Source: Laetmonice hystrix (Eukaryota). From it: a DNA stretch of 64,000 nucleotides. Made by a program: the position numbers and the translations under genes. Of the stretch, positions 8,951 through 56,424 are shown one piece after another; the stretch's first letter is position 1, and each line of letters opens with the position of its first letter. A model generated the notes under the pieces. The model saw only the letters and a program-made list of their open reading frames with translations, was not told the DNA's origin and ran no database searches. The DNA is taken from the NCBI GenBank assembly GCA_965235115.1, contig OZ249446.1:10664001-10728000 (forward strand), read 5' to 3'.

Positions 8951-8984
<34 letters not shown>

Positions 8985-14294: not shown

Positions 14295-14712
14295 CTAGTG
14301 CTCGATAGACGCGACCTCTGGGTCTAACTGAAAGTAGCGCGGGTCCTCCTCTCGTTCCGACAGCGTATGCTCGTTGCTATGGTCCATCCGGGCCAGCGTG
14401 TTGTTGCCATAGCTCTGATCATGCGCAGACGTCGCCGTGGCATACGTCGGCAGGGAGTTGGACCGATACTCGTATCCTCCCGAACCGGTCCCCGTCCTAT
14501 CCAGCGTCCCAGCCGCTTCAGTTCCATTTCGAGGTTGAGGCAACGGCATTTCCCAAATATGGGCATACTCGTTTTTGTCTCGGCCCGGGACCATGCGTTT
14601 ATCAAAGTTTTGCTGGTTGTCCCTCGTTTCATAGTTAGCCTTGTTGTAGGCTTCAACCTCGCTGGCGTTCAGCTGGCATGCTGTAGGAGGGCGACGCTGG
14701 CGCACCTGGCGG
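14295..14712 (-). CDS. Exon 7: cytoplasmic tail with multiple Tyr motifs, ends ...PRYFQLDPEVASIEH*
   Basis: Acceptor actttctttgcag|C in phase 2 matches the TM exon. Lies inside ORF 14295..14741. Confidence 0.85.
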
Positions 14713-17700
14713 CTGCAAAGAAAGTTAATTGCAGGGATCAATCTCTAGTGTTCAATTATCGATCATTCCAGATAAATACAACTCCTGATTGACCTATAAA
14801 TGAGAATACGAACTCTTAGCTTTTGTGTTTGGTCCGATTTCATCTATAGCCTACTAATTAAGGCTCTTATTGCAATACGCAGCTGTCATTAAAACAACTG
14901 TATCTCAGGCCTTGATTAGGAAGCGGATAATGACGGGAGAGCGCTGAGAAAAACCAGTTCTGATCCTAGGATTACATAACTGATTTAAAGACACTAGAAA
15001 GGTTACCTTTTCAATACTATGAGTCCTACGATGAATATGACCAGTCCAATTGTCACGGCCACCGCGAGGATTACAATGATAGACAGTCCTGGATCAAAAG
15101 ACAACGAAAATCATTTAACCGCAATTCGCTAGGTGGCAGCACCTCCACCCGACATCCTCTCGGTATACACGTTCTCCGATACGCCTTTCTAGCGTAGCTC
15201 TCAAAGATCTGAATCCGACCAGGAATACGTGGGTACTCACTTCTTCTAAATGTCTACGGGCCTTAGTGGCAGAGTTTTACTCGTTTTAGTTTTACCAATT
15301 TAATTTTTTATCTCCATCACCGTTTTGAATCTGCTTTCATTTCTTTAAACATGCTTTGTCGTATATTAAGACATACTTCAAAAGGTGTTTGCAATAGATT
15401 TTGTGCAGATGTGAGCAGTCGACTTACCTGAGGGCATATTACTGCCACTGAACACACTCTCCGCGAATATTCCTCCGCTACCTGTGTCAAAGAACAAAAG
15501 ATGTCGATAAAAAAAAACCACACAGAGATAAAGGTGGTAACTACGATATTTGCCATCCATTCTAAGTGACAGACTTGAAATGAATCAATGCCGTTTACTG
15601 AAAAATGACACAGACTTCAAAGGTCAGAAAGAGATAGATGATCAATAGGGCTCGGGACGAGCAGATAGGGTACCTGCCACCCCGGTACGGTAGGAAGGCT
15701 AGCGCCGGTACCCGCCCTGACAGCAGATAGGGTACCAGTGGGTGCCACCCCGGTACGGTAGGAAGGCTAGCGCCGGTACCCGCCCTGACAGCAGATAGGG
15801 TACCAGTGGGTGCTACCCCGGTACGGTAGGAAGGCTAGCGCCGGTACCCGCCCTGACAGCAGATAGGGTACCAGTGGGTGCCACCCCGGTACGGTAGGAA
15901 GGCTAGCGCCGGTACCCGCCCTGACAGCAGATATGGTACCAGTGGGTGCTACCCCGGTACGGTAGGAAGGCTAGTGCCGGTACCCGCCCTGACAGCAGAT
16001 ATAGGGTACCAGTGGGTGCTACCCCGGTACGGTAGGAAGGCTAGCGCCGGTACCCGCCCTGACAGCAGATATAGGGTACCAGTGGGTGCTACCCCGGTAC
16101 GGTAGGAAGGCTAGCGCCGGTACCCGCCCTGACAGCAGATAGGGTACCTGCCACCCCGGTACGGTAGGAAGGCTAGCGCCGGTACCCGCCCTGACAGCAG
16201 ATAGGGTACCAGTGGGTGCTACCCCGGTACGGTAGGAAGGCTAGCGCCGGTACCCGCCCTGACAGCAGATAGGGTACCAGTGGGTGCCACCCCGGTACGG
16301 TAGGAAGGCTAGCGCCGGTACCCGCCCTGACAGCAGATATGGTACCAGTGGGTGCTACCCCGGTACGGTAGGAAGGCTAGTGCCGGTACCCGCCCTGACA
16401 GCAGATATAGGGTACCAGTGGGTGCTACCCCGGTACGGTAGGAAGGCTAGCGCCGGTACCCGCCCTGACAGCAGGTACCAGTGGGTGCTACCCCGGTACG
16501 GTAGGAAGGCTAGCGCCGGTACCCGCCCTGACAGCAGATAGGGTACCAGTGGGTGCTACCCCGGTACGGTAGGAAGGCTAGCGCCGGTACCCGCCCTGAC
16601 AGCAGGTACCAGTGGGTGCTACCCCGGTACGGTAGGAAGGCTAGCGCCGGTACCCGCCCTGACAGCAGATAGGGTACCAGTGGGTGCTACCCCGGTACGG
16701 TAGGAAGGCTAGCGTTGATCACAAGCCAAGGTGTGTTGTGACGAAGTAAGCAGGCACGTGTCACTACCTTTCCGGCGACTGGCAGCTGTTTTTGACTGGC
16801 TTAACACACGCAATTACATCATTCAGGCCATAAAACACGCTCGTTTCTCACAGGAAAAAGATGCAGTAATCTTGTCTTTCTTCTTGGTATTAGAAGCACG
16901 CCAGAAAACACAGCAGCCACTCGGCCACTAGCTAAGCGTCAGACATTAATTCCAGAGGCGCTACAAGCGTCGGCTTGCTGTACACGGGTCTAAGCCTAAG
17001 TCACTTCGGTTGGCGCCATACCAAAGAGCTTTGATGTGGAAGGACTAGATGTTCGTCCATGCATTTTGTGTTTTGGAAATGAAAATTCTACTCGTGCAGA
17101 CAGGAACTGCGCCCCTGGTCAAATTAAATGAACATCAAGAGGCTTTTCAATTAGAGCTTTCCTTTTGAAATGATGACAGCCTTCCCTGTGGTGGGGGCGT
17201 GGCGGGGGAGGGGTTGTTTGTGTGTGCATGGGTAGGGGGTGAGATGGAGAGGCAGGGGTATGGTTTGTTTGTGTGTGCATGGGGAGGGGGTGAGATGGAG
17301 AGGCAGGGGTATGGGTTGTTTGTGTGTGCATGGGGAGGGGGTGAGATGGAGAGGCAGGGGTATGGTTTGTTTGTGTGTGCATGGGGAGGGGGTGAGATGG
17401 AGAGGCAGGGGTATGGTTTGTTTGTGTGTGCATGGGGAGGGGGTGAGATGGAGAGGCAGGGGTAGGGGTTGTTTGTGTGTGCATGAGGAGTGAGAGATAG
17501 ATGTATGTGACTGTATGTGGCTGATAGGAAAGGCATTTTATATTACTCTACAGCGGTAGGTATATACAGTAATGTTTTTGTAAATGAAGCCTGGTAGTGA
17601 ACCATCTATTTCCAACACTCCGTGTTTTGGACCTTACCTGCCGTACAGTTAGTGTTTGCCTTGCCCTGCCAAGTCCCGTCCCGACATTTCAGCTCCCAGC

Positions 17701-20700
17701 GGTCGTCTGACTGGTCACAGCCCAGTAGGACGGTCTGCCCGGAACGCCGGGTCCAGCCGTGGGGCGGCTTCGGGGGGTCAGGGCAACCCAGCGCTGAAAC
17801 AGGGTACAATATCAGGGTTATTACATCTTTTATTATGCTTCCGCAGTTTCCCTCAACAAAATTCTGCACATGGAACCAATGGTGAAAATGATGAAAATAT
17901 ATGGGATGATCAACAAAGATATGACCACATCTTATGGAAATCCACCTAGGCCTAAAAGATCATAGAATGTTTAAAACATATAGGATAGGTATCATCGCAA
18001 ACATCGTACTATTAGTTCTTGCATATATAAAATACACATCTGTATTTTTTTCAGATCTCAGCATTTATCACACGGAATGGGCTCCACTTTGTTAGAGCCT
18101 AAAAATATCCTTTGATTTACACACGTTGGGGTGGGGTGCATGGGGGGTTCCTCTTCTATATTGAGTATGTTATTTATTTCTTAGGTCTATTTTGCCCTGT
18201 TTGGTTTGAGTGTGTGAGTAGAGATCAGACCATGGTGGAAACGATGACAGCGAGGTGGTATGATTGATGGTATTATCCGTACATATCGCGGGCAGTATGA
18301 GACCCTGGCGTGTGTGAGTGTGTGAGTAGAGATCCGTCAGACCATGGTGAAGACGATGACAGCGGGGTGGTATGATTGATGGTATTATCCGAACATATCG
18401 CTGGCAGTATGAGACCCTGGCATGTGTGAGTGTGTGAGTAGAGATCAGTCGTAATCAGACCATGGTGGAGACAGCGAGGTGGTATGATTGATGGTATTAT
18501 CCGTACATATCGCGGGCAGTATGAGACCCTGGCGTGTGTGAGTGTGTGAGTAGAGATCCGTCGGTATGATTGATGGTATTATCCGAACATATCGCGGGCA
18601 GTATGAGACCCTGGCATGATATCAACGCCTTTGGTAATGATAATTATTTTAATATGAAGCTGGCTCCTAACGGCTGACATGGAGGATCCTGGCGCACCTG
18701 CGGCACCCAACCCCACCCCCAACCCACCCCCACAACACCCCAACCCCCTACCCGTCAGTCTCACCCTCCGCTCTGATCGGCACAGGTTCCGTAAACAAAG
18801 TGAGTAGTATATGAAACTCTCCATTGAAGCAGGCCCAGCTGACCGGAGTGAGTATTATGGAAACTCCCCATTGAAGCAGGCCCAGCTAACCGGAGTGAGT
18901 AGTATATGAAAACTCCCCATTGAAGCAGGCCCAGCTGACCGGAGTGAGTATTATGGAAACTCTCCATTGAAGCAGGCCCAGCTGACCGGAGTGAGTATTA
19001 TGGAAACTCCCCATTGAAGCAGGCCCAGCTAACCGGAGTGAGTAGTATATGAAAACTCCCCATTGAAGCAGGCCCAGCTGACCGGAGTGAGTATTATGGA
19101 AACTCCCCATTGAAGCAGGCCCAGCTAACCGGAGTGAGTAGTATATGAAAACTCCCCATTGAAGCAGGCCCAGCTGACCGGAGTGAGTAGTATATGAAAA
19201 CTCCCCATTGAAGCAGGCCCAGCTAACCGGAGTGAGTAGTATATGAAAACTCCCCATTGAAGCAGGCCCAGCTGACCGGAGTGAGTAGTATATGAAACTC
19301 CCCATTAAAGCAGGCCCAGCTAACCGGAGTGAGTAGTATATGAAAACTCCCCATGGAAGCAGGCCCAGCTAACCGGAGTGAGTAGTATATGAAACTCCCC
19401 ATTGAAGCAGGCCCAGCTAACCGGAGTGAGTAGTATATGAAAACTCCCCATTAAAGCAGGCCCAGCTGACCGGAGTGAGTAGTATATGAAAACTCCCCAT
19501 GGAAGCAGGCCCAGCTAACCGGAGTGAGTAGTATATGAAACTCCCCATTGAAGCAGGCCCAGCTGACCGGAGTGAGTAGTATATGAAAACTCCCCATTGA
19601 AGCAGGCCCAGCTAACCGGAGTGAGTAGTATATGAAAACTCCCCATTGAAGCAGGCCCAGCTGACCGGAGTGAGTAGTATATGAAACTCCCCATTGAAGC
19701 AGGCCCAGCTGACCGGAGTGAGTAGTATATGAAAACTCCCCATGGAAGCAGGCCCAGCTAACCGGAGTGAGTAGTATATGAAACTCCCCATTGAAGCAGG
19801 CCCAGCTGACCGGAGTGAGTAGTATATGAAACTCTCCATTGAAGCAGGCCCAGCTGACCGGAGTGAGTAGTATATGAAACTCTCCATTGAAGCAGGCCCA
19901 GCTGACCGGAGTGAGTAGTATATGAAACTCTCCATTGAAGCAGGCCCAGCTGACCGGAGTGAGTAGTATATAACTCTCCATTGAAGCAGGCCCAGCTGAC
20001 CGGAGTGAGTAGTATATGAAACTCCCCATTGAAGCAGGCCCAGCTGACCGGAGTGAGTAGTATATGAAACTCTCCATTGAAGCAGGCCCAGCTAACCGGA
20101 GTGAGTAGTATATGAAACTCTCCATTGAAGCAGGCCCAGCTGACCGGAGTGAGTAGTATATGAAACTCTCCATTGAAGCAGGCCCAGCTGACCGGAGTGA
20201 GTAGTATATGAAACTCTCCATTGAAGCAGGCCCAGCTAACCGGAGTGAGTAGTATATGAAACTCTCCATTGAAGCAGGCCCAGCTGACCGGAGTGAGTAG
20301 TATATGAAACTCTCCATTGAAGCAGGCCCAGCTGACCGGAGTGAGTAGTATATGAAACTCCCCATTGAAGCAGGCCCAGCTGACCGGAGTGAGTAGCATA
20401 TGAAAACTCCCCATTGAAGCAGGCCCAGCTGACCGGAGTGAGTAGCATATGAAAACTCCCCATTGAAGCAGCCAAATTATCCCTGCCTTTCAACCTCTCG
20501 ACCCAGAACGGAATTAGTTGTCTATTCATACATCTTTCCAGATAAAATCTGATGTAGTTGCAAGGCGTGAAAGACTGTGCCGTCGTTAGACAGACTTTCA
20601 CTGGCAGGATGATGACACAAATTACGACTACACTATCGTTGGCAGTGCCAGAGATGGCTCTGTGAATGGGACTAATGTTCCACAAACTGGAGAAAAATGC

Positions 20701-23700
20701 CTTTTCAGAAATGGATGCCGCCAGAATAAAAAGCAGTGTGAAGTCCAAAGTGTCATCGCCAGCCGTAGGTCTCGTCTGGAAGTTGTTCCTTCCGTTCTCA
20801 CGGTTGGTTAATCTCTCCTCCCCTCCCCTCCCCATATCGTACACACTGTCCCTAACCCTCCGCCCGCCGACTTCTAGCTCATCCTTTAGCCGACTGACAC
20901 CCCAACTGTCAGGGCAACGTGATAAATGACGACTTACACTCGTGCGTGAAAATCGATGTGTAATATGGCGTAATTTCCTGCGAACACCCATCTGAAGCGA
21001 CTAGGAACCCCATCTGAGTGATATATGACCTGGCTTGTATTTCCGACTTCCCTTAAATCCGCATCCTCTGAGAAGGTTGGCTACGTTTCCAATATGCCCA
21101 TTTATAGCCAGGGTAATATGCCAGTGGCGCCTCAAACCATGATGTTAAATTCTCAGTAAGTTTCCGCCACATGAGGGCTGGTGTACCGGGGTGTGGAGCC
21201 ATGTTTGGCGGTATGGAAGTGGAGGGCACTTGGGAATGTAATAAGACCGAGTCGGGGTCAAGGGCCGCCGACCGGGTGGTGGCCCGGGGTGGCCCGGGGT
21301 GGTGGCCCGGGGTGGCCCGGAGCTGCCCCCGCCCCCAGGGGGCAATGATGTCATGGCCCGGATTAATTTAGCACCGACACAGATGTCGGCCTGGTTTATC
21401 GGGTACTGGCGTCTGTGGGGTCACGGGGGCATTATCAGATAACACTAGGGCAAACGAGGGGTCATAATGGCGCCAACCCCCGCCCCCTGCCTGCCCCCAC
21501 ATGGAGTGTCAGGGGGTGGGGTAAACGTAGTGCCCTTCTCCCTGTGTTGTCGACAGACATTCTTCTGGAGAAAAGCTTTAAATGTGGCATGATGCCACAC
21601 GCCGCGGAACAATCGGTTCTAACAAACCCAGAGTCTCCGACAACACAGCACTGTTTTAAGTGACAGCCAGGCCAGATGTGAACGATGAACTCTTCATGCT
21701 ACAGACTCCGAGAACAGGGACTTAACGGTTTGGGACTGATTCCCAGAGATAATTACATCTGGAATGATTAAAGACTGAATTGATCAGATCTTACTGCTGC
21801 CAATGTCAAATTAATATGTTTGATGTTTCCGCCATCTCAGTAGAGTCCCATCTCGTTCGAGGTGTTGAGCATGGAAGAAAAGGCTTTATCTAAACGTCGT
21901 TGGTCGAATAATTATTGTCCACCGGGAAACATTTCAGCGATACACTCAGCTATCATGTATCCATTGCCTCGTTCCCACGACAGTCCCCTTTTTAAACCCT
22001 CCTCCCTTTCACCCTCGCCTTGCCTCTCCTTCTCGTTTTTCCACGTCATCACAAAGAAACCACATCGATCTCTCATAATCTCAAGCAGTACAAGATCTTC
22101 CCTCTTTGACAAAAGTGATCTTACGTTACTCCTTATTGTTATAAAATTATACTACCCCAGTGTTAACAACCACTTTTTGTTCAACCTAATCCCACTTTGG
22201 TAGAATTTACAAAACAAAAAATCAGAAAAGGGAAAACTCTTTATTATTAAACACACGAATCTTGAACAGGCAATATCAATCACAGCCCAGAAACAATTCC
22301 CGCGTCTCGTACATAACATAAACACCCAGTCCTTGGTCCCCACACCCGAGCACCAGTCCCCATACCCAGTCCTTGGTCCCCACACCCGAGCACCAGTCCC
22401 CATACCCAGTCCTTGGTCCCCACACCCGAGCACCAGTCCCCATACCCAGTCCTTGGTCCCCACACCCGGCCCCCAGTCCCCATACCCAGCCCCGGTCCCC
22501 ACACCCAGACCCCGGTCCCCATACCCAGCCCCGGTCACCATACACAGTCCCCGGTCCCCACACCCGGCCCCCAGTCCCCATACCCAGCCCCGGTCCGACT
22601 CTGGCCCTCCGTAACCAAGTCACGCAGTACCCACCGTTTTCAGTAGATTGTGGAGTTTTGTTCTACTGCCGGAACACGGGGACTACATGTCTGCCGAGTC
22701 GATCCGCTCCACGCCCACTTCAATGGGCAGACGTGACCGAAATATTGCCTCTTCTGCAAAATTGCCTCCCCATTACTGCACTGATGGGAAACATGGCGTA
22801 CCCTCCCGGTGTGATTTGACCGAAGAGCGACCAAACGGAGCGTAACACCCTTCGGTTATTTTAGGTATTTACTCTGGCCTAAATTACAGACTGCTTTCTC
22901 GGCAGTAAGTGAGGAGAAGATAAATGAACGGCAGATAGATCAGTTGAGCTTAGGACGACCACCAAGCGTGCTGACTCATCGTATATATCTTACAATCTTC
23001 TTATCTTAAAACATATATCATCTAAAGAAGGATGAAAACAATGACGATGATGGTGACATATTAATAATTTTAATTATGAAGAAGTTACTGGGTTCAAGAT
23101 ATTTCAACATGATTATTGCTCTCATTATTTTTAAATTGATGACTATGATTTACATTCCACAGCGTGTATGATTACTTTCATCAGAATCACTGCCGTATTA
23201 ATTAATAAGACCTGGCTCGTCACTCACAGAGGACGACTACCCTTTGACGGGTAGTACACGGTTGTTTGATCTGCCTCCATACACAGCTCTACGTCTCTAG
23301 ATGAGATAATGACTGGTGTTGGAATGGTTCCATGTACACGTGTTCTCTGCCATGTCGTCGGTTGTCAGTTCTATGTTCTTTGTCTGCCGACATCTGCTAA
23401 ATGTGATCAAGAGCCTGTTGATATATCTCTCACACACAGGTAGATCAGGATACTCGGGCCACAGTGTCGTGTCCGATATGGGGTTAGTCAGCAGGTGTTA
23501 GTTATAGTGTAGGTGGCCAGCAGGTGTTAGTTATAGTGTAGGTGGTCAGCAGGTGTTGGTTATAGTGTAGGTGGTCAGCAGGTGCTAGTTATAGTGTAGG
23601 TGGTCAGCAGGTGTTGGTTATAGTGTAGGTGGTCAGCAGGTGTTGGTTATAGTGTAGGTGGTCAGCAGGTGTTGGTTATAGTGTAGGTGGTCAGCAGGTG

Positions 23701-26700
23701 TTGGTTATAGTGTAGGTGGTCAGCAGGTGCTAGTTATAGTGTAGGTGGTCAGCAGGTGTTGGTTATAGTGTAGGTGGTCAGCAGGTGTTGGTTATAGTGT
23801 AGGTGGTCAGCAGGTGCTAGTTATAGTGTAGGTGGTCAGCAGGTGCTAGTTATAGTGTAGGTGGTCAGCAGGTGCTAGTTATAGTGTAGGTGGTCAGCAG
23901 GTGTTAGTTATAGTGTAGGTGGTCAGCAGGTGTTAGTTATAGTGTAGGTGGTCAGCAGGTGTTAGTTATAGTGTAGGTGGTCAGCAGGTGTTAGTTATAG
24001 TGTAGGTGGTCAGTAGGTGGGTTATCATTACATCCTACGATGTTGAATAATTATTTCGAACTCAGTCCCAACGTATTTATCCCCCAACTCTTTCCTTCAT
24101 TCTTTCTATCTCTCTTTCTGTTCCCGTCGCAAGGGTCGCCTCTATACGGCGTCTCTCTACATGTGTCCGTGTGTACTCCCAGAGACACGACAGTTGTAGG
24201 GTCGCCTCTATACGGCGTCTCTCTACATGTGTCCGTGTGTACTCCCAGAGACACGACAGTTGTAGGGTCGCCTCTATACGACGTCTACATGTGTCCGTGT
24301 GTACTCCCAGAGACACGACGTGACGGTTGTAGGGTCGCCTCTATACGACGTCTACATGTGTCCGTGTGTACTCCCAGAGACACGACGTGACGGTTGTAGG
24401 GTCGCCTGGCGTCTACATGTGTCCGTGTGTACTCCCAGAGACACGACGTGACGGTTGTAGGCTCGCCTCTATACGACGTCTACATGTGTCCGTGTGTACT
24501 CCCAGAGACACGACGTGACGGTTGTAGGGTCGCCTCTATACGACGTCTACATGTGTCCGTGTGTACTCCCAGAGACACGACGTGACGGTTGTAGGGTCGC
24601 CTCGCCTCTATACGGCGTCTACATGTGTCCGTGTGTACTCCCAGAGACACGACGTGACGGTTGTAGGGTCGCCTCTATACGGTGTCTACATGTGTCCGTG
24701 TGTACTCCCAGAGACACGACGTGACGGTTGTAGGCTCGCCTCTATACGACGTCTACATGTGTCCGTGTGTACTCCCAGAGACACGACGTGACGGTTGTAG
24801 GGTCGCCTCTATACGACGTCTACATGTGTCCGTGTGTACTCCCAGAGACACGACGTGACGGTTGTAGGGTCGCCTGGCGTCTACATGTGTCCGTGTGTAC
24901 TCCCAGAGACACGACGTGACGGTTGTAGGCTCGCCTCTATACGACGTCTACATGTGTCCGTGTGTACTCCCAGAGACACGACGTGACGGTTGTAGGGTCG
25001 CCTCTATACGACGTCTACATGTGTCCGTGTGTACTCCCAGAGACACGACGTGACGGTTGTAGGGTCGCCTCGCCTCTATACGGCGTCTACATGTGTCCGT
25101 GTGTACTCCCAGAGACACGACGTGACGGTTGTAGGGTCGCCTCTATACGGTGTCTACATGTGTCCGTGTGTACTCCCAGAGACACGACGTGACGGTTGTA
25201 GGGTCGCCTGGCGTCTACATGTGTCCGTGTGTACTCCCAGAGACACGACGTGACGGTTGTAGGGTCGCCTCTATACGACGTCTACATGTGTCCGTGTGTA
25301 CTCCCAGAGACACGACGTGACGGTTGTAGGGTCGCCTCTATACGACGTCTACATGTGTCCGTGTGTACTCCCAGAGACACGACGTGACGGTTGTAGGGTC
25401 GCCTCTATACGGCGTCTACATGTGTCCGTGTGTACATGTGTGTACTCCCACAGACACGACGTGACGGTTGTAGGGTCGCCTCTATACGGCGTCTACATGT
25501 GTCCGTGTGTACTCCCAGAGACACGACGTGACGGTTGTAGGGTCGCCTCTATACGGCGTCTACATGTGTCCGTGTGTACTCCCAGAGACACGACGTGACG
25601 GTTGTAGGGTCGCCTCTATACGACGTCTACATGTGTCCGTGTGTACTCCCAGAGACACGACGTGACGGTTGTAGGGTCGCCTCTATACGGCGTCTACATG
25701 TGTCCGTGTGTACTCCCAGAGACACGACGTGACGGTTGTAGGGTCGCCTCTATACGGCGTCTACATGTGTCCGTGTGTACTCCCAGAGACACGACGTGAC
25801 GGTTGTAGGGTCGCCTCTATACGACGTCTACATGTGTCCGTGTGTACTCCCAGAGACACGACGTGACGGTTGTAGGGTCGCCTCTATACGACGTCTACAT
25901 GTGTCCGTGTGTACTCCCAGAGACGTGACGGTTGTAGGGTCGCCTCTATACGGCGTCTACATGTGTCCGTGTGTACTCCCAGAGACACGACGTGACGGTT
26001 GTAGGGTCGCCTCTATACGGCGTCTACATGTGTCCGTGTGTACTCCCAGAGACACGACGTGACGGTTGTAGGGTCGCCTAGGAAGGAGATTATATATCGA
26101 TGCCACACATGGGGATTCTGCCCAACATTTCCCGTTGGCGACGTCTTTGTTCTTGAAAGGGATGCCTCGGCTTTGTACGGGCCTTCCGCGGATGGCCGCG
26201 GGCGGGGCTGTGTGAAGGGGCCTAACATTGTATCCTGATCGCTGTCGGGGCCACTTCACATATTGTCACCGGTACCCGCACAATGGTGGGCGTTTGGGGC
26301 ACGCCCTCCGGGGGCCCCCAGACCCCACCTCCCTGCCTGCGGCAAACAATACCGCACGGATCCACAAAATGATAATATCATCAACGATGTGCGTTTCAAG
26401 TGGTGGCCAAAAGAATTCTGAAACGCCTGGAACTCATAGAACTACTTTTAGCAGGCAAGCATGCCCCATAATACGTCCGTGAAAATGTTACGTAGTCACA
26501 ACTAGTGTGCCAATGGTGTGTAGAAAATAGTTGGCAATGGTATGCAGAAAATGCCAAGGCATGCAGAAATGGGAGACCAATGCATGGCAATAGAAGCGGA
26601 ACGAGCTCAGTTCTGAATCATGGATATCTTTGTCTTTTAATACTACAAAATACAATGTTTCACTTTCTATCATTTACGGAGTTATTCTTTCCCGGACAAA

Positions 26701-35700: not shown

Positions 35701-36001
35701 GCAAGTTCATGTTTAGTACCCGGCAGCTTTCGTCCACCTCACGTCGCTCTCGCCCACCTAACATTGGTGGTCTTTACCGGCACCTCATCGCCAGTAACGA
35801 CCTCTGTCGGGGGGAATGGGAGTGAGGGTTCATTACCCGGCATGCCGTGCGGAATTCATTACCTCAGAAACACCCCTCAAGACACGAAATTGCTTTCCGT
35901 GGACCCTGAGACACAGCTTGTCTCTCGGGCATTCGGGTGACAACATTCCGTCGCTAATGATGCTTCAACTGGGAGGAAACACCAGCTAGTTGATATAGGC
36001 T

Positions 36002-36049
<48 letters not shown>

Positions 36050-39000
36050 CTACTTTGTTATCCCGCTAGATACATCACAGAATGCGCGTTTCAGCGAGTA
36101 TTCGAGAGAGTGAGATGACAGAGTACTTTGATAAATGCACTCATGGTCATACTCCCTTCGCTGGGGGCCAGTGGGTGTGAAACCAATGGGTATGAAACCA
36201 TTGGATGTGAAACCATTGGGTCTGGAACCAATGGGTCTGGAACCAATGGGTATGAAAACATTGGATGTGAAACCATTGGGTCTGGAACCATTGGGTCTGG
36301 GACCAATGGGTGCGAAACTAATGGGTCTGGAACCAATGAGTGTGAAACCATTGGGTCCGGAACCAATGAGTCTGGAACAAAGGGGTCTGGAACCAATGGG
36401 TCTGAAACCAATGGGTCTGAAACCAATGGGTGTGTGTGGAATGGAAGCAATTTGAGGGGTGTGTGAGTGTTACCACTCTCTGTGTACTGAGTGTAGATCT
36501 ATACACAGAGCCCAGAAATCCTCCGATTCATGGTAAACTGAATGATGACCGTCGATTTACGCAGAGATTGTGAGAGGATCTGATATGTACAGAAACGTCT
36601 TCCTTCTCATTTTCTCATTATGAGAGGATTTCATCCGTCCATGGAAAGTACGTTTTATTTTATAGGTTTCTATTGCCGAAAATAGAATGGAGCTCCTTTT
36701 TACTCTCTCTCTCACTCTCTCGCTCACTCTCTCTCTCTCTCTCCCTCTCCTCTCTCTCTCTCTCTCTCTCTCACTCTCTTTCTCCCTCTCCTCTCTCTTT
36801 CCAACCAAAATAATACGAAAAAACTTCCATTCCGCCCCCCCCCCCATAGTAAATTGATTGGTGATTTTCTGCATGGATGTCGTTATCTCCCAATAATCGA
36901 CCAGCTATTAGATGTTAGAAGTTCCAATTGCCTCTCCAGAAATTACCCGCCTCTTTAGCCTACATTTCCCTTCTTCCTGCGCGACCGGCAAGATCCAGCT
37001 CGGAGGTTAGTGGGTGGTGGACTTAGATGGCTGAGGCCTTGCTGGAAGACGGTGCTTGAAACAACTGTAAAGTAGCGAACCAAATTCCCGCCACTGCTCA
37101 TTAAGGCGCTGCCAGGCCCACTTAGAGCCGATTAACATGACGAAATGACTACGATCCGTCGGCATGGCGACGTGTAGACGCCGCCAGCCGGGGTCAGCTG
37201 GGGGCACGGACGCTGCCGGAAGAGCCGGTAGCAGTTAGATTTTGATTGGATGTTAATTTCATGTCATAATTGGACACTTTGATTGAACGTGTATTTGACG
37301 CTTGAAGATAAAGTCTTGGATGTAATCCGCGATAACCTCCTATCTCCCATTTAGAAACGATGACCCGCGCTGTTAGACCAAAAAAAGTTTCGTTTCTTGT
37401 CCTTTCGGATCTAAAAAAAGTTGGTGCGGTCGCGCGGCTTTTTTCTTTTTCTTTCTTTCTTTTTTCCCCGATACAACCAGACAATGGCCGTGCTGGTGGT
37501 CCCTCAATAACATGCCCTCATTATGACAGGACATTTCTGGCCAGAATTAAGCTTTAGAGCCACCTAGGAACCCATGATGCATGATTGGTTCGAGATGGCC
37601 ATGATGTCCGGTGATGATAGTGCCGTTATGTATATAATATAAGATTATCCGGTGATTATATAATGCCGTTATGTATATAATACAAGATTATCCGGTGATT
37701 ATATAGTGCCGTTATGTATATAATATAAGATGTCCCGTGCCCTCTGATACCCCTGTCGGGAGCACTGGGTGAAAGGACGTCGCAGGGAACAAATTCGGTT
37801 CTCTAACTTAGCTCGACAGGAAGGTATAAATATATATATCATATTGATACAGTGTAGAGAGATATAATAATTGGCTGGAGCACATGCAAACATACACATG
37901 CTTTAGAACTTCCCATTTGTTTCGATTGATTTTATTTGAAAGTGACATAAAAACTGGGACGATATCGTAAAGGTCATCCGTCAATGTCACAACTGATGTC
38001 ATATCGGGTTATTTGGTATCAGCCATGGGCAGGACGTCATTCTCCCACACACCCACACCCACACCCTACAACCCACGTCCACACCCACACCCACACCCAC
38101 ACCCCAAACAGATCCATGACAACATCTGTGAAATCCTATATTGACTTCGATATTCAGAAAAGTGCACTGCAAGAAATATTAAGTTCCGTGTCGGTGTGTC
38201 CGCGTGTGCCTATATAGTCGGCCACACACAACCTATAGATCCATACATATTCTTGGTTCCTACCACGCAGCCTTCATTAGATCCACACATCTATCCCTGA
38301 TTCCGAACATGTACCCCGCCCTAATACCTACTGGCTAATGTTCCACAGTCCCATCTGTCGTACGCGCCTCTCCGGAAATGGAGGTAAGATTTCGTATGTC
38401 AGATAAGCGCGCGACGGGAGGAAGAAGACATAGAAAATGGCCGCTGGCTGCGTCACCGCGCGCGGCATCAGATGTCGTAAAGCTAGTTAATATTGGCTGT
38501 GGCGGGCCAAGGTAAGATTAGGGCGGTAAGATAACGTCCCTCAGTAGGACATGGGCCGCCACACATTCCCTTCAGTGTGTTTCTACCTCTAGCGTCTCTG
38601 AAGGCAGACACGTGGAAATGAAGACTCCAGGTTCTCAGACCACAGCCAAGCTTTCTACCAGACCCCTCCTATCTCCAGAATCTCAGACCACAGCCAAGCT
38701 GTCTACCCGACCCCTCCTATCTCCAGAATCTCAGACCCAGCCAAGCTGTCTACCCGACCCCTCCTATCTCCAGAATCTCAGACCACAGCCAAGCTGTCTA
38801 CCCGACCCCTCCTATCTCCAGAATCTCAGACCACAGCCAAGCTGTCTACCCAACCCCTCCTATCTCCAGAATCTCAGACCACAGCTAAGCTGTCTACCCG
38901 ACCCCTCCTATCAGAATCTCAGACCACAGCCAAGCTGTCTACCCGACCCCTCCTATCTCCAGAATCTCAGACCACAGCCAAGCTGTCTACCCGACCCCTC

Positions 39001-42000
39001 CTATCTCCAGAATCTCAGACCACAGCCAAGCTGTCTACCCGACCCCTCCTATCTCCAGAATCTCAGACCACAGCCAAGCTGTCTACCCGACCCCTCCTAT
39101 CTCCAGAATCTCAGACCACAGCCAAGCTGTCTACCCGACCCCTCCTATCTCCAGAATCTCAGACCACAGCCAAGCTGTCTACTCGACCCCTCCTATCTCC
39201 AGAATCTCAGACCACAGCTAAGCTGTCTACCCGACCCCTCCTATCAGAATCTCAGACCACAGCCAAGCTGTCTACCCGACCCCTCCTATCTCCAGAATCT
39301 CAGACCACAGCCAAGCTGTCTACTCGACCCCTCCTATCTCCAGAATCTCAGACCACAGCCAAGCTGTCTACCCGACCCCTCCTATCTCCAGAATCTCAGA
39401 CCACAGCCAAGCTGTCTACCCGACCCCTCCTATCTCTAGAATCTTCAATTGAAGCCTGAAGGCTGACCTTAAAGACTCACGCATGCGCAGTGTACGTGAG
39501 CTGGGACGAGGGCTGCCTGGTTTAAACTAAAGACGAAAGTCCCATCCATAAATCAACATCATACTCGTGCAATAATGGATCTTCAAATTGGGACGGACCA
39601 AGGACTACCGCTGTCTCATGAATTATTATTTGGACCACCTTCTAGGGCTGTGGGAGATTTAAGTAGGCCTATAAACTGACGGGGTAAGATATATTGGTGG
39701 GCATATTGTTCGTGGCATACCAACATCATCCCATCGACTGCCCCCATATATTTCTAACCCTCGACTCTCATACAGTCATAAGTCATGAGAGAGATATAAC
39801 ACGTGGGTGTTATAACTATAGGTTCTACCTGGAAATTATCACAGTTCCTCGAAGGGTTAAAAACTTAGAACCCCATGACATGGAGTGAAAAAATGGTGGA
39901 CATGGTGGGACATGGACACGCCGCCACAGCAAGGTTGGAGGAAGATGGATGAGAGAAAAGTTGTAATCTGTGTTATGAAGGACAATACACGACCAGGAGG
40001 AACGTTATACCACGTGACTTATCTGGTCATCTCGCCATTTACAAGCAGATCGTGTTTTTAATCAGTCTGATCTCCCCGTCCCCACACGCTCTGATTTCGG
40101 TCCTTTTTGTCGTGATTGAAACTCCGACAGTTGATAATGGGTGGGTCACTGGGACGCTGGCGGGATCACGTTTCCATGGAGACCGTATGAGAGCGAGGCT
40201 GTGGAGCCTCGTCTCGCTGTGATAAACTGGTGATAGATGGACGCCCCACATGCTGGCATTGTCAGGGTTATCTCGCCAAGTGACGTAATATTTCACGGAC
40301 CTTATATCCACCACATGTCAGTCATTGCGCGCCGCCTGCCGGCCGGGGCTGACACAAGAGGAGGATGGCACAAAACAAGGCGACCACGCAGGCGCACTGT
40401 ACCCTTCCTCTATCGTAAAAGAATCATGTCGCTGAATACCCAATGAGTATTCTCTGCACTAGACGGCGCTTCACACAAACCGCCCGCAGTTTCATATCTT
40501 TTAACGTTAAATGAACATTTAGAGTTCATTTCGGGAGCCGGGAGCGGCCTGGTCGGAAACCAGGAGAGATTTCATTGCGTGTAAAGTAATGGAACACGTT
40601 AGAGAGAGAGATGTCTGGGGTGGCAGGATTTGTTTAGGCAGCGATCGTGTCTCCACGAATCAAGGCAGGGTCGGTGGGGACTGAAGGAGGCGCTACACAA
40701 AAACCTGGCGGCTCCTTGCTCCACACGAAGGCTGATGAATTTTTAACGATGATACAATTAATGTTTTACCACCACTTAATGTACTTAACGTCCACTGTGA
40801 GAAGAGTTTTTATTTTCTGCGGAACTGATGTCCTCGGCAGGGCGGGAGTTTGTGTGTGTGTGTGTGGGAGGGGAGGGGGGGGGGGTCGTACGAGGAGGAG
40901 GGAGATCGACGCGCTCACAAAGTGACTTGATAATTATTCCACAAGGGCGGATATGAAAGAAGCTACGATTACAATACTCAGAGAAGCACCTCTCCATTCC
41001 CAAGATTGCTTTTTAATACACACGGAACAGCGAATATGAAACCATTTCCTTTTTTCATATTCATTTCATTCAATTTGATTTGACTGTTTTTATGCAGTAC
41101 GCAGGGTAATGAAGAGAGCAAGCTGAGCCTGCATGGCCGGCGATATATTACTCTTCCATTACATAGATAACCACGCTGTACGTCAGTCACCTTGAAGTCA
41201 AACTAATGTGTATCCATGTATGATATGGAGATAGTGACTACACTTTCCTATCTGACTGCTATACTGTCATTCTCTGCTCTCTCAGTGATCCCATACATTG
41301 AATATTTTAAGACGTCACATCTTAATGAGAATGAGAAGGGAGAGAATAATTGAAGTTGCGAGGATATTATTTTTCCTTTCCTGTTTATTTATTTCCCTTT
41401 ACAATTGAATTCTTCCTTTTTATCCTCACTGAATCGACGATGTTTTCTGCGTCTTAATTAAGGGGGTACTCGAAGAATGTGTTCAGCAGTCTCACGGAGC
41501 ACACAGACTGTCGAGACCAATTATATTAACCGTCAACCGATGGGAAACACTTGAGGGAAATCCCCGTCTAAATAAATCTTTCAGGCTGCGTGAGATTTTC
41601 TTTTTGTATTCTGTACACCGCATATATGATTATCATTAAACTGGACAGGTTTGCTATAATTATATATACTGAACCTTTAACCTGTGACCAAGCGAACTTT
41701 CCCAGCATAGCATTCGGAGAGAGGGAAGAATATCTTCTACAAACAGTAGAGGGAGAAGAATATGTCGTATTACACATAAAATCTTTGTTTCTCTTAACCC
41801 CTCATTTCAGATGTATCGTTATTTTAAAATTCAGTTAAATTAATAATGGCGGAAAGGTGAAAATCGGACAAACGGCTGAATTTTACATAACCTTTCAAAC
41901 TTGTTCAGTGAACTCCCATAAATCATAATATTGGAGTGTTGGGAGGCGGCGCTCACATGAACCCATTGTAGGCCTACACTTCTGCCCAGTTTTCAGTCTC

Positions 42001-45000
42001 ACTGATGTGATCACCAGTGTCTCCATAAAACAACTGCCAGAATGCAGTGGCGGATTTAGGGGGGCCACAGGGCCCCCCTCCCCCGAAATATTTCAAAAGC
42101 AGGGTTTTGCCCTCCCCCCCATACTAAGTGACCCTTGCCCATGTCAGGTAGCTATGGATCCATTCATCCACCCACACACCTGTGCCCCCCCCCCCCCCCG
42201 AAAAAAAATCCTGGATCCAGCCCTGGAATGGAGTTAGAAAATTTACGTCTCCAATCCATGCTTCAGCTTTGAATAGCCGCATTCTGTATGACTGGTGATA
42301 TACATTCAAGTTGAGAGTATTTTCCAAGGTTCAGCCATGCGCCCGGCCCCATCGACTAGCACAAACGAGGTCGCTATAGTCGAGGACAAACTGGTTTAAT
42401 TTAGTCTATGATGTGGGCTGGGATTGTTTGCGCATGCTCCCAGCGCCGGATGGAGTCGACCATTGAGACCATTAAGGACGCACGGCCTGAGTTTATCTAG
42501 TGGAGGGTGGCCGGAAGTGCTGCCCGCCTCCCTGTAATCGACACGCGCATGCTCGAGTTGACTCTGGTGCTGTTAGCGCGAAGGAAGTGACAGGACGGCG
42601 TGAATGTCATTCTGTCTTGACGTGACATAAACTACGTGAGGTTTAGATTCGGCCTCACAAGCAAACTATAGGCGCTGGGTATGTTGGCCTGATGCACACA
42701 AGGAGACAAGGTAGTCACCGATAACGCTTTTACCTAGAACTTGATCTAGATTGACCCATCGAGTTTACACTCTTTTAATATTATCACAACTAGAGGCGTA
42801 AATATGCATTGCATCGCCAAATTATCTATCAAATAATACCGGATTATCCCAGTATGTTAGAAAGTGATCAATATAAGTCTACTCTATATTCAGAAAGTCA
42901 TTGTTCATTAACCATCGTTCCGAGTAAAGTTTCGGGAAAGGAAATGACGGTCGAAATATTATATTCGAAATTATATGTCCTGGGCTGATTCAATAATTCG
43001 TAGACCAAGGTATTTCTAAAGTCACCCCACTGTGTAGAGAAAAGAAAGTTATTAATTTAGATTTCATCGGATTGTCGCCCCCAACAACGTTAGCTCTCGA
43101 TTCTTCCTCTGTTAAATGTGCGTTGTGATGTTTCATTACCAGCCCAGTTGTACACGGCAGCACAGCTCCGTTCGAAGTCACTGAAAGGGTCTACTTGAGC
43201 GATCACAAAGTGTAGGCGAGGCAGCGTACGGAATTTAAAATACAAAAAGCCTCCGTTTCTCCGCGCGATTCTGACCCGCCCCAGTCGGAATAAGTCCCTA
43301 TGGGAGTGCGGCTGAGATTTAGCTAATTCCCATTTCTTTGTGTCGTAGAACTTTACAAGGCTTTATGAGAACGCAGGCGGGCTCATTCCAATTTCAAAGC
43401 GGCAACGCTGCTTTATCAGAGGGGACGCCGAAAATTGCCTCAGTGACGTCTTCCGAGTACAGTGCATGCTGGGAGTCCATTGATGCCGCGCAGAATTTGT
43501 TATTTCAGCCGGTAGGGGGAGCTGGAGGCTTAGAGACCTGGGAGGGTCTCATCTCCTCGGTTGTAGCAACATACACTGGGGTACTTTATTGGTGTGCACT
43601 GGGAGAGAGACGAGATATTGCTTAAAGTCATTCTCCCCGACAGAGTATCATCCCCCGGGCCCCACTGACGGCCGACATGATAAGCCACGCTGTGTCTTTG
43701 TGAACGCTTCACCATTTCAGTGTGGAGACGCCCTGCCGTCCTGCACGCGCGAGGGGGTGGGGGTGGGGGGCTGGGGGAGGGGGGCAGGCAGGACAAAAAA
43801 CTAGGCCACCCCATCATCATCAGTGCATCTCGCATACACCGGTGGGCAACAATGATTTCAAATTATGGTATCCCATTCTGTCCGACACAATGGCCCGCCG
43901 CGAAATGAGTTTTCCCACTCCGCCAAATGAACAGAGATTGGAAAGATCATGGCGCGGTCAGGTATGTCGGAGGTAAACAGAAGAGCCTCCGGTAACTTAA
44001 CGATGTAACGTCATCATACATTCAGCCATTTATTAACTATCCGACACCTGCCGCAAAAGTTTCCACAGACCGATAATGATCTCTCCCGAATATCAAATAA
44101 CGCCAATAAAACTCTAAATGGCTCCCATTGTACGGTGTCCTTTTCAACTGGGTCACGTCAGCGGAGATCACCATTGGCTACCTGTCACGTTCGGAAAGCC
44201 TAACAATAGTTCCGCGCCCATTACGTCACCCAAACAATTGAATTTGTAATTTGGTAATTTGTCGCCGGCTGAGCGACCCGCCTGGAGCGATCGGTTATAG
44301 GAGGGGTTATCGCGCGTCCCCAGGACGACGTACAGCGGCTAGTCACAGCGTCCTGGTAGTATGAGTCGCGCACTCAGCACGACAAACCAACATTAACGTC
44401 TCGATGACGTTAGCTCTCGATACGATACGCCATAATGTCACAAAAATATTGGCAATCAAGGAGACGAGGCGTCATTTAATATCATATCACACAAGCCTGA
44501 AATAATCCCGAGACCTGCTCAGATGTCACTTGTCCGGGATGTGGATGTCGGTCGAGAGCCAAGTTTCTCCTTGTCATCGATCGCGATGTCTTCACATAAA
44601 AAATGTCCAACACACGTCCATGGTGGTGGTGGTGGTGGTGGTGGGGGGGGGGGGGTAGCTACTTTTCTAGGAGGTTGGAAACTAGGGAACCACAGACAAA
44701 AATGGACACTGAACTGGGATGACTTTTAAGAAGATAATGGACAATTTGATACTCATAGGGGCCTATAAGGAATGTTTCCACTCAGGCGATTGTCCTTATT
44801 GCGACGCCCATGCCATTTTGACATCACCATTTTATTTTACAGTGATTTTGAGATTAAAGGATGGAACCCATTTCCAGAAGCAGGGAAGGCCATCCAGGAA
44901 AAAATACAGAGTGACATTCCACCATTAAATCAAAAATCGTCGCAAGGACAATCACCATGTGGAAATCGTCCTTTAGCAGAGACAGTGCATGCACTGTTTT

Positions 45001-46107
45001 TTTTGTTTTTTTTTTATTTTACACATATTTAGCCACGGTACAGGCCTATGTAGGCCTAAGTATGTAGGCTATGTATGTATAAATAGTCTCCATGTGAAAT
45101 ATTCAGAGACCAAAACGTGTAAAATCGACATGACCTCCTACATTATTTACCCATGCCCCCACTGTCAGCGTGTTTCTTAAAGTCAGCCCAGGAGACTGTT
45201 ATCTGAGAGCTGACATATGAGCTAAGAAAACCGTGAAGCACTGGGCTCGTTTATCCGTGTAACTCGACGATTAATTTCTAGCTCTCCTCGATAATCCGTG
45301 CAAAGTGTCATTTCCCCGTTCTTAACTCCCACTTCGTTTATTTACGAGAGGCACTTGTGAAAATTTCCTCTGCACCAATTACCTGCGGTGCTGGCGAAGA
45401 CTTTGACTTTAAAACGCTATCGATTCATGGTTTAAGTCTTTGATTTAATTTCTGTTTGAACTGTTTGCTAGTGTGCCCTCAATTAAACTTTTCTGTCGCC
45501 ACGACAACGTTTTCCCACGCCCTCCATTAGACTAATTAAGTTTTTTTTACAAGCCCTCTAAAGGGTTTCCTAGGGATAAGTGACTTGTCACTGTGCCAGA
45601 GGGAGTCTTTGAACGCGATAGCAGGCAATTAGGCTACATTAGTTTTTAAACCTCGTTTTAATGACATTTCTCGGAAACATTATAGGCGGAAAGCTTGCGG
45701 ACGGCTCCGTCAATGGGACGGCTTGATTGAAGCGGCATGACGGAAGACGTTCAGCAAGCACGCCGTCTCCCCACGACCAGGTCGTTGTCAGGCACAGCAA
45801 ACATCGTGTTTTCAACTTAATACCCGACCATCAGTGACTGAATCACACCCATGTCGAGTTTACCTATACCTCTTGTTACTTTATATCAATTATACTATTA
45901 TATCAACAAAACACAACAGCCTGAAACCAGATTATCGGTGTTGTTCGTAGTGTAACGCTGTGAGTAGATTTTCTTAAAGAAGTCGTGAAATGGCTTACCT
46001 CCCATGGCTGCACTGGTGCGGATCCAGAGAGATAACACAAGAACAGTCATCAGTATGTCCACACAATGTACTCGTCCGAGGGGGTGAAATGGCAAGTGGA
46101 ATTCCAT
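14295..46107 (-). CDS. Spliced gene: type I membrane protein, signal peptide - SUEL lectin - CUB - sushi/CCP-like - linker - TM - Tyr-rich tail (503 aa)
   Basis: Exons 46107-45999, 32352-32068, 29507-29100, 17793-17638, 15481-15428, 15088-15007, 14712-14295. All introns GT-AG, phases 1,1,1,1,1,2 all match. Total 1512 nt = 504 codons ending TAG. Domains recognised from Cys/Trp patterns. Confidence 0.85.
15007..15088 (-). CDS. Exon 6: transmembrane helix (GLSIIVILAVAVTIGLVIFIVGLIVLK)
   Basis: About 24 consecutive hydrophobic or small residues followed by basic residues. Acceptor cttttgatccag|, donor AAAG|GTAACC. Phase 1-2; not in the ORF track. Confidence 0.88.
15428..15481 (-). CDS. Exon 5: 54-nt Gly/Ser juxtamembrane linker (GSGGIFAESVFSGSNMPS)
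   Basis: Acceptor ctttgacacag|, donor TCAG|GTAAGT. Phase 1-1, open frame. Confidence 0.75.
15655..16713 (+). repeat. 68-bp minisatellite rich in GGTACC (~16 copies), intronic
   Basis: Unit gggtaccagtgggtgctaccccggtacggtaggaaggctagcgccggtacccgccctgacagcagata. Confidence 0.95.
17212..17485 (+). repeat. 51-bp G/T-rich minisatellite (~5 copies), intronic
   Basis: Unit ggtgagatggagaggcaggggtatggtttgtttgtgtgtgcatggggaggg. Confidence 0.95.
17638..17793 (-). CDS. Exon 4: short sushi/CCP-like domain (GCPDPPKPPHG...LGC...LKCRDGTW...NC)
   Basis: Four Cys plus Trp in CCP spacing. Acceptor ctgtttcag|, donor GCAG|GTAAGG. 156 nt, phase 1-1. Confidence 0.85.
18207..18617 (+). repeat. ~110-bp degenerate tandem repeat (3-4 copies), intronic
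   Basis: Repeated gtgtgtgagtagagatc...ggtatgattgatggtattatccg.acatatcgc.ggcagtatgagaccctggc. Confidence 0.85.
18803..20471 (+). repeat. 48/49-bp minisatellite (~34 copies), intronic
   Basis: Unit gaaactc(c/t)ccattgaagcaggcccagct(g/a)accggagtgagtagtatat; accounts for the MESFIYYSLRSAGPAS-type ORFs. Confidence 0.97.
22325..22592 (+). repeat. 40-bp C-rich minisatellite, intronic
   Basis: Unit ccccatacccagtccttggtccccacacccgagcaccagt, degenerating toward the 3' end. Confidence 0.9.
23482..24018 (+). repeat. 29-bp minisatellite (~18 copies), intronic
   Basis: Unit gttatagtgtaggtggtcagcaggtg(t/c)t(g/a). Confidence 0.97.
24133..26079 (+). repeat. 67-bp minisatellite (~29 copies), intronic
   Basis: Unit ggtcgcctctatacg(a/g)cgtctacatgtgtccgtgtgtactcccagagacacgacgtgacggttgtag. 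Confidence 0.97.
27285..27500 (+). repeat. Degenerate purine-rich tandem repeat (gatggacagaagg / ctggcct words)
   Basis: Repeated ggcctgatggacag(a/g)agg motifs of irregular length. Confidence 0.65.
28925..29091. other. Assembly gap (167 N)
   Basis: Run of N ending 8 nt from the CUB exon donor. Confidence 1.
29100..29507 (-). CDS. Exon 3: CUB domain
   Basis: SGKIAS...CPWIIEVGAGQRVNISLVDF...C...CG...NTVEIRI...FLLQY pattern. Acceptor aattttgcag|, donor CAAG|GTGAGT. 408 nt, phase 1-1. Confidence 0.9.
30425..30848 (+). repeat. 71-bp minisatellite (6 copies), intronic
   Basis: Unit ctgaactgaagtcaccaaaccctggctcactgccagcattgtatctcagcaattgaggatggtcctcggcc. Confidence 0.96.
31850..32037 (+). repeat. 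34-bp minisatellite (~5 copies) next to the lectin exon donor
   Basis: Unit catgatgagatatgatgtatggccctacttttat. Confidence 0.92.
32068..32352 (-). CDS. Exon 2: SUEL / rhamnose-binding-lectin (Gal_Lectin) type domain
   Basis: Eight Cys in SUEL spacing, ARYGR motif, C-terminal YLEASYTC. Acceptor tgtttcag|, donor AAAG|GTACTT. 285 nt, phase 1-1. Confidence 0.9.
32393..32436 (-). pseudogene. Truncated, diverged copy of the start of a SUEL exon (VVEYFKLNTSDAEC) in the intron just before exon 2
   Basis: Aligns without gaps to the real exon start VVEYCQFETFEAEC. 14 nt are identical (32423-32436 vs 32338-32351). Out of frame with exon 2. Confidence 0.55.
34177..34337. mobile_element. ~160-bp MITE with CATAGGCGTACG-type TIR and G/C homopolymer subtermini
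   Basis: cataggcgtacg vs catacgcccata (3 mismatches to a perfect inverted repeat). A similar left end occurs near 12687. Confidence 0.45.
34545..34900 (-). mobile_element. Degenerate CR1/L2-group LINE, C-terminal region of ORF2
   Basis: Broken frames give AGFV...ASII..LNE..PAVQDQARQDALRL and SSPRALWDWNG, resembling ARFV...SV..ML..L.W..L..RR...RL and SFFPRT..DWN. Stops and frameshifts present. Confidence 0.45.
35420..35780 (-). mobile_element. Degenerate CR1/L2-group LINE reverse-transcriptase fragment
   Basis: In expected order: DESCRVLNMNL (D...V.Y.DF.KAFD position), LRAVWMRVAISGHYQTW, then VPQGTV (35463-35474 encodes VPQG). Confidence 0.55.
36004..36046 (+). repeat. (CT)n microsatellite
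   Basis: Pure CT run. Other CT-rich tracts lie at 6510-6553, 36701-36800, 51514-51582 and 56372-56422. Confidence 0.95.
36165..36432 (+). repeat. 15-bp minisatellite (~17 copies)
   Basis: Unit (g/t)gaacca(a/t)tgggtct with variants. Confidence 0.92.
37374..37436. mobile_element. Terminal fragment of the 4399-4712 MITE family
   Basis: tagaccaaaaaaagtttcgtttcttgtcctttc...aaagttggtgcggt matches the reverse complement of 4655-4713. Confidence 0.6.
37605..37730 (+). repeat. 43-bp tandem repeat (3 copies)
   Basis: tgccgttatgtatataata(t/c)aagattatccggtgatt at 43-nt spacing. Confidence 0.85.
38623..39440 (+). repeat. 48-bp minisatellite (~17 copies)
   Basis: Unit ccagaatctcagaccacagccaagctgtctacccgacccctcctatct. 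Confidence 0.97.
42045..42225. mobile_element. 181-bp MITE with CAG...CTG termini and poly-G/poly-C subterminal tracts
   Basis: TIR cagtggcggatttagg / cctggatccagccctg. Flanked on both sides by GAATG. Confidence 0.65.
45999..46107 (-). CDS. Exon 1: putative signal peptide MEFHLPFHPLGRVHCVDILMTVLVLSLWIRTSAAMG
   Basis: Kozak-like gccgcaATGG, hydrophobic core ILMTVLVLSLWI, small residues SAA, and a strong phase-1 donor GGAG|GTAAGC that matches the phase-1 lectin exon. The link across a 13.6-kb intron is inferred. Confidence 0.7.
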
Positions 46108-46299
46108 TGCGGCTATTTGAGGGGGAAAAGCCGGGCACAATCCCTTTTCTGCTGTCAGTCACACTTGATTCGACGCGGGCCCGATTTGTTGGGCGTGTTT
46201 GGCTTGCCGAGTCTTCCTTGCTTGAGTTCTTGCTCTCTGTGCCCTCAAGGCCAATCCCTGTGTGTGCGTGCGTGCCACTGAATGTCGTCTGCCTTGCCC

Positions 46300-46560
46300 T
46301 CCAATTGTAAAAGTCGTCTGCTGAGCGCGTCCGGTCAGGCGGGGCTGTAACCTCAGTCTGCGTACACGTCTCTGGCGCCTCTAATCAGATGACACTCGCA
46401 TTAAATATTGAGCGTCGGCGCGCGGGACGCTGAGGCTTATTGCGCGCAGACGCGGCACGTGGACTGCCTGCGCGGAACCAAACCAGTTAAACACTTGATT
46501 AGGGACGGGCTCCGTCGACTTGGACCCCAAGGGGGACACCCCTCCACCGCAAACGGGGGG
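46300..46560 (-). promoter_or_regulatory. CpG/GC-rich region, candidate promoter of the lectin-CUB receptor gene
   Basis: Dense CG dinucleotides (gcgtcggcgcgcgggacgc, gcgcgcagacgcggcacg) 200-450 nt upstream of the proposed ATG. No ATG on the minus strand in the ~200 nt before the start. Confidence 0.35.

Positions 46561-56363: not shown

Positions 56364-56424
<61 letters not shown>

Follow-up and report, generated by a model that had tools for sequence, protein, structure and literature searches.

The window analysed here, a stretch of 64,000 nucleotides from Laetmonice hystrix (GCA_965235115.1, contig OZ249446.1, positions 10,664,001 to 10,728,000), contains on its minus strand what is probably an intact protein-coding gene for a 503-amino-acid type I membrane protein of the annelid 'Gal-binding and CUB domains containing receptor' family. 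The predicted protein consists of a signal peptide, a SUEL domain, a divergent CUB domain, a short CCP (sushi) module, a stalk, a single transmembrane helix, and a non-catalytic, tyrosine-containing tail. The family already has a name in GenBank, where the architecture has been deposited, and the gene is a conserved, solitary member of this family, for which the motifs of the cytoplasmic tail are the most useful new lead.

Gene structure

The gene was assembled from seven exons within 46107-14295, which have AG acceptors and GT donors, join in one frame, and sum to 1512 nt, equal to 503 codons and a stop (Table 1). Exons 2 to 5 are symmetric with respect to phase, and each holds a single module. 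The lengths of introns 1 to 6 were 13,646, 2,560, 11,306, 2,156, 339, and 294 nt, respectively. As the transmembrane exon has only 82 nt, it was missing from the track of open reading frames (ORFs). The seven exons and the 503-residue frame had been proposed in a sequence-only reading of this DNA, and they were recovered here with intact splice sites. The domain order and single-pass topology of that reading also stood. With regard to genome annotation, a complete seven-exon model is obtained where ORF-based callers yield fragments.

Table 1. Coordinates of the receptor gene and the assembly gap, with amino acid identity and the ratio of nonsynonymous to synonymous substitution rates (dN/dS) of single exons against the orthologue
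Feature	Position	Strand	Length and content	Identity to orthologue	dN/dS
Exon 1	46107-45999	-	109 nt; ATG (46107-46105) and predicted signal peptide; ends in phase 1
Exon 2	32352-32068	-	285 nt; SUEL / rhamnose-binding-lectin-type domain; phase 1-1; compared with L017:7213-7494	80%	0.086
Exon 3	29507-29100	-	408 nt; predicted divergent CUB domain; phase 1-1	77%	0.116
Assembly gap	28925-29091		inside intron 3
Exon 4	17793-17638	-	156 nt; predicted short CCP (sushi) module; phase 1-1	53%	0.26
Exon 5	15481-15428	-	54 nt; juxtamembrane stalk of 18 amino acids; phase 1-1	65%
Exon 6	15088-15007	-	82 nt; transmembrane helix; phase 1 to 2	92%	0.036
Exon 7	14712-14295	-	418 nt; cytoplasmic tail of 140 amino acids; stop at 14297-14295	61%

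The small stalk exon was the sole conserved stretch in the intron between the sushi and transmembrane exons when two orthologous loci were compared by tblastx. Its AG and GT sites and its phase were retained in contigs L014 (54 nt) and L011 (51 nt), and a stalk was also found at the matching position in the alignment of family cDNAs.

The integrity of the reading frame around the assembly gap in intron 3 was also considered. The CUB exon is followed by the donor GTGAGT (29099-29094) and two further bases, after which a run of N starts at 29091 (GTGAGTCG then N), 8 nt past the donor G. Since the run begins after the exon 3 donor, the gap is intronic and breaks no reading frame. Moreover, the CUB exon of the orthologue ends with the identical codon and phase, and in family cDNAs and full-length proteins the CUB domain leads directly into the sushi module with no intervening residues. 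Thus, a hidden coding exon in the gap is unlikely, and no loss of coding sequence is apparent.

The weak point of the gene model, as read from the genomic sequence, is exon 1, that is, the junction from 45999 to 32352. Two results weigh against the model here. In the orthologous locus, the 15.8 kb preceding the SUEL exon yielded no convincing counterpart of exon 1, and a search of sequencing runs for the locus returned three DNA-type runs from one study and no RNA run. Because no RNA run covers the locus, the exon 1 junction and the inclusion of the stalk exon rest on sequence. Both results, together with an intron of 13.6 kb that is long by family standards, would fit a different 5' end, with the true first exon elsewhere and 46107-45999 being a chance signal-peptide-like ORF. 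However, over the 17.6 kb that precede exon 2 (32353-50000), no other exon was found that resembles a signal peptide, fits the phase, and has a good donor. The exon has a hydrophobic core, the donor GTAAGC, and a good start context, in which the ATG is flanked by G at -3 and +4. In addition, joining it to exon 2 reproduces the spacing of the aligned family members, in which the signal peptide is followed by the 'EYC' start of SUEL. A wrong 5' end was therefore considered unlikely. The signal peptide itself was called from hydropathy only.

Family membership, size, and distribution

To place the gene among known proteins, the CUB exon was searched with phmmer/HMMER against 1.84 billion protein representatives, giving 1662 matches, mostly single-exon ORFs. 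The domain order of the gene was also found in two Arenicola marina proteins named in GenBank 'Gal-binding and CUB domains containing receptor' 15 and 2 (UCK81578.1 and UCK81577.1; phmmer E-values of 3e-18 and 2.5e-17) and in the Capitella teleta hypothetical proteins ELT96203.1 and ELU09978.1. The description of the protein as an orphan in the sequence-only reading was consequently abandoned. In the alignment, the signal peptide stands directly before a single SUEL domain with equal spacing in UCK81578.1, UCK81577.1, and the Capitella proteins. The CUB domain that immediately follows SUEL is of the family type, and the gene falls inside the family CUB tree. The best identity to UCK81578.1 in this genome was 45-54%.

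The gene thus shares with the Arenicola and Capitella receptors the signal peptide, one SUEL domain, the family-type CUB, the predicted short CCP, the stalk, a glycine-spaced transmembrane helix, and a non-catalytic tail. Nevertheless, their CUB domains are only 30-46% identical to that of the gene. The tail is peculiar to the orthogroup of the gene, while other family members carry EHIYESPK-type motifs instead; a HIWE(T/M)PL motif is common to the gene and some family members, including Capitella ELU09978.1 and the transcript-like P0106. Moreover, the gene is solitary, with long minisatellite-rich introns, whereas the other family members are mostly clustered in tandem.

Structure and sequence collections beyond GenBank gave a similar distribution. 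The top matches in AlphaFold DB were SUEL-type lectin proteins with template modelling (TM) scores of 0.77-0.81. The organism column was blank, but the accession prefixes presumably point to Capitella, Dimorphilus, and Helobdella. The nearest Atlas clusters were mostly from Annelida. Several full-length matches ran uninterrupted on Logan contigs of 2-2.7 kb. Judging from this continuity, these contigs are probable transcript assemblies, and the architecture would accordingly be expressed in other worms.

In the genome of L. hystrix, 56 matches to the CUB exon, 58 to the SUEL exon, and 43 to the sushi exon were distributed over three contigs, mostly in tandem clusters, and the family comprises at least 55 loci. 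The expanded, lineage-specific family that had been suspected from the sequence of the window was therefore found. The gene stands alone, with the nearest family members about 1.25 and 1.6 Mb off. Most of the nine closest paralogues (L002-L010) have a near-identical database counterpart, such as P0027 for L003 and P0067 for L004, which indicates that much of the family expansion predates the split of the sister species. In literature searches by GenBank family name, architecture, and assembly accession, no paper on the function of the family was found. One apparent match, PMC13094222, had been retrieved only through 'j.cub' DOIs and was discarded.

Orthologues and selection

Walking along a contig that carries an orthologous locus (ENA ERZ25767047, contig ctg39097) recovered exons 2-7, with their order and splice phases unchanged. 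The overall dN/dS against the orthologue was about 0.10, with dS saturated, and by this comparison the gene is under strong purifying selection. The lowest identity among the exons was that of the CCP (Table 1). The CUB, CCP, stalk, transmembrane, and tail exons were also found within 5.8 kb of the distant contig L011 (GCA_022702875.1). The CUB match on this contig (L011:1143-1418) begins only at exon residue 44, which could reflect an additional intron within this CUB or an incomplete contig.

In the tree of CUB domains, the gene of the window formed a group with P0001 (89% identity), L016, L011, and P0003, which had starred support and excluded the nine paralogues most similar to the gene. 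On these comparisons, the gene is an orthogroup of its own, and one-to-one relatives occur in four or more other assemblies.

A silent or decaying copy was considered as an alternative to a functional gene, given that no RNA run was found for the locus. However, all seven exons are open, the splice sites are intact, and the dN/dS of 0.10 was obtained while dS was saturated. The pseudogene was rejected on the basis of dN/dS and is highly improbable.

Extracellular domains

The SUEL domain was detected by Pfam above the cutoff (PF02140, E-value 3.2e-10), and its relatives in PDB were the rhamnose-binding lectin 5h4s (E-value 2e-13), CSL3, and the lectin domains of latrophilins (E-value 1e-5). 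It has eight cysteines in residues 42-129, and the YGR motif is present as ARYGR. The carbohydrate recognition domain of SUEL / rhamnose-binding lectins is characterized by eight conserved cysteines and by YGR, DPC, and KYL motifs, the latter two as DPCxGTxKYL (PMC10817417). In the gene, the DPC motif is missing and KSYL replaces KYL (TSTC...ELKSYLE vs DPC.GTYKYLE of solved lectins). The SUEL domain of the orthologue has TKYLE, while DPC is likewise missing. Since DPC is missing and KYL is altered, classical binding of rhamnose or galactose by the domain is doubtful, and this tells against a sugar-binding receptor. By analogy with latrophilin and EVA-1, a protein ligand for the SUEL domain is possible.

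The CUB domain of exon 3 was below the Pfam cutoff (PF00431, E-value 0.013, 16.2 bits vs 21.4). A profile of 74 family CUB sequences, by contrast with this single-sequence score, matched the CUB domains of cubilin (E-value 3.5e-5), PCPE-1, and TSG-6. The AlphaFold2 model of the domain had a predicted local distance difference test (pLDDT) score of 85.7, and CUB domains dominated its 50 listed Foldseek matches in PDB, with probability 1.0 and TM scores of about 0.5. NETO2 and neuropilin were among the structural matches, and a collagenase PPC domain was ranked 36th. The model thereby supports a CUB beta-sandwich fold, divergent in sequence, for exon 3.

The CCP module of exon 4 was also below the Pfam cutoff (Sushi, E-value 0.03, 15.1 vs 20.7 bits), and two of 23 family members matched Pfam Sushi. 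Four cysteines and two tryptophans were invariant over the alignment of the 23 members. A search of PDB sequences with the CCP profile gave no match. The best Foldseek matches of the AlphaFold2 model (pLDDT 85.6) were the CCPs of MASP-1/3, C6, beta2-glycoprotein I (beta2-GPI), and factor H, with probabilities up to 0.97 and a TM score of 0.65, but with an E-value of only 0.25. With moderate confidence, exon 4 is therefore modelled as a short CCP.

The ectodomain was further compared with those of known systems. Rhamnose-binding lectins (5h4s; CSL3, 2zx0) have the same fold family, the eight cysteines, and YGR. However, these lectins are secreted, are made up of one to three lectin domains, and carry DPC and KYL, whereas the gene has a single SUEL domain without DPC, fused to CUB, CCP, and a transmembrane helix. 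EVA-1 / EVA1C and the latrophilins (ADGRL) are, like the gene product, membrane proteins that open with SUEL. Nonetheless, EVA-1 contains two SUEL domains in tandem but neither CUB nor CCP, while the gene has one SUEL followed by CUB and CCP, and latrophilins have olfactomedin, GAIN, and seven-transmembrane regions, none of which was found by Pfam in the gene product, which has a single hydrophobic span. SEZ6, CSMD, NETO, DCBLD, and neuropilin resemble it in the CUB fold, the single transmembrane segment, the partner-dependent tail, and a CCP beside the CUB, but they have no SUEL, no detectable sequence orthology to the gene, and other domain numbers and tail motifs. Membership in the EVA-1, latrophilin, and SEZ6/CSMD groups was rejected on architecture.

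Transmembrane helix and cytoplasmic tail

The transmembrane span consists of 25 hydrophobic residues followed by KSRQVRQRR, in agreement with the positive-inside rule, and is the single hydrophobic span of the protein. The glycine-spaced pattern G-L-x-I-x-x-x-G-L was common to the whole family in the alignment, a hint that helices may associate within the membrane. The helix was the most conserved segment of the protein in the comparison with the orthologue (Table 1).

The tail contains eight tyrosines among its 140 residues and is non-catalytic, with no Pfam domain found in it, as the sequence-only reading had described. Seven orthologous tail exons were found in other assemblies. In all eight orthologous tails, N-x-YAHIWEMPLP, DPRYFQLDP, and a Y-x-Y were invariant, while the remainder drifts. 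Accordingly, two invariant tyrosine motifs are present, namely, NEYAHIWEMPLP, which contains YAHI, and DPRYFQLDP, in which DPRYFQL is of the [D]PxYxxL type. A distance of 77 residues separates YAHI (Tyr 414) from YFQL (Tyr 491). As 6-12 residues are expected between the two YxxL/I motifs of an immunoreceptor tyrosine-based activation motif (ITAM), this motif was rejected, a point that tells against conventional ITAM signalling by the receptor. The C-terminal EEDPRYFQL resembles NPxYxxL-type sorting/PTB motifs and acidic-prefixed hemITAMs.

When the tail exon was searched against its own genome, only one weak paralogue match was obtained. This locus, G000:C12:22797033-22810342, is the only paralogue with a similar tail (38% over 96 amino acids, E-value 2.4e-6), and matches to SUEL and to a split CUB were located just upstream of the tail match. 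By sequence similarity, it is possibly a sister gene of the orthogroup.

Repeats and neighbouring sequence

The long introns of the gene are packed with minisatellites (15675-16714, 17214-17490, 18799-20471, 23487-24019, 24132-26079, 30424-30847, and 38625-39444), for example, a 48-bp unit in 34.7 copies, a 67-bp unit in 29 copies, and a 68-bp unit in 15 copies. These intronic minisatellites account for many spurious long ORFs in both orientations. Upstream of the gene, long tandem-repeat arrays at 55036-56553, 58401-59291, and 60294-60992 contain repeat ORFs of 200-500 amino acids on both strands. Downstream of the 3' end of the receptor gene, a plus-strand open frame of 521 amino acids (8092-9657) has a coiled-coil-like N-terminal part, a long poly-Q/K run, and no Pfam match. 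This frame probably belongs, as a large exon, to a gene next to the receptor on the plus strand.

Possible functions and significance

Lacking a catalytic domain, the protein must rely on partners to act. In the proposed mechanism, the ectodomain would capture a glycan or protein ligand outside the cell. The tyrosine motifs of the tail (YAHI in NEYAHIWEMPLP and DPRYFQL) would recruit SH2/PTB-type adaptors once phosphorylated, or clathrin adaptors for uptake, and the conserved glycine-spaced helix may associate with itself or with a partner. These details of ligand capture, adaptor recruitment or uptake, and helix association are drawn from sequence motifs and are held tentatively, at somewhat less than even chances. 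To our knowledge, no kinase, adaptor, or ligand has been described for any family member, which likewise counts against the proposed mechanism.

Three roles were weighed for the receptor. Given its slow evolution and one-to-one orthologues, the gene would suit a rapidly evolving immune function no better than a conserved one in housekeeping or development. Accordingly, the protein may be a developmental or neuronal co-receptor for adhesion or guidance, whose SUEL domain binds protein rather than sugar. The SUEL domains of latrophilin and EVA-1 bind proteins, and the missing canonical DPC motif of the sugar site, the solitary gene with one-to-one orthologues and a dN/dS of 0.1, and the invariant transmembrane helix and tail motifs favour such a role. 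Since the rest of the family resembles a clustered, expanded repertoire, this role is possible but doubtful.

Conversely, the same repertoire of at least 55 family loci in tandem clusters would suit an innate-immune or symbiont pattern-recognition receptor, similar to the secreted rhamnose-binding lectins but membrane-anchored and with a signalling tail. Rhamnose-binding lectins bind lipopolysaccharide and act in invertebrate immunity (PMC10817417; PMC5117596), which adds to the case for an immune role. However, the gene is slow-evolving and single-copy per species, and the sugar-site motifs of its SUEL domain are degenerate. An immune role was thus regarded as rather unlikely.

The third role follows from the tail. 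With its acidic-prefixed [D]PxYxxL and YxxI-proline motifs, the orthogroup could represent a conserved annelid-specific signalling or phagocytic receptor, although this specific assignment is quite unlikely. It was likened to hemITAM C-type lectin receptors and to NPxY-type engulfment receptors (CED-1/Draper and LRP1), from which the SUEL-CUB-CCP ectodomain of the gene is wholly different. If this reading were true, the receptor would represent a lectin-type route from receptor to adaptor that evolved independently in Lophotrochozoa.

Cell-surface recognition in annelids is poorly known, and here a name exists for a family of over 50 single-pass receptors whose function was not found in the literature. 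The gene described here is suited to a first functional study of this family, as it is single-copy, is conserved across species, and has short invariant tail motifs that allow concrete predictions about its partners.

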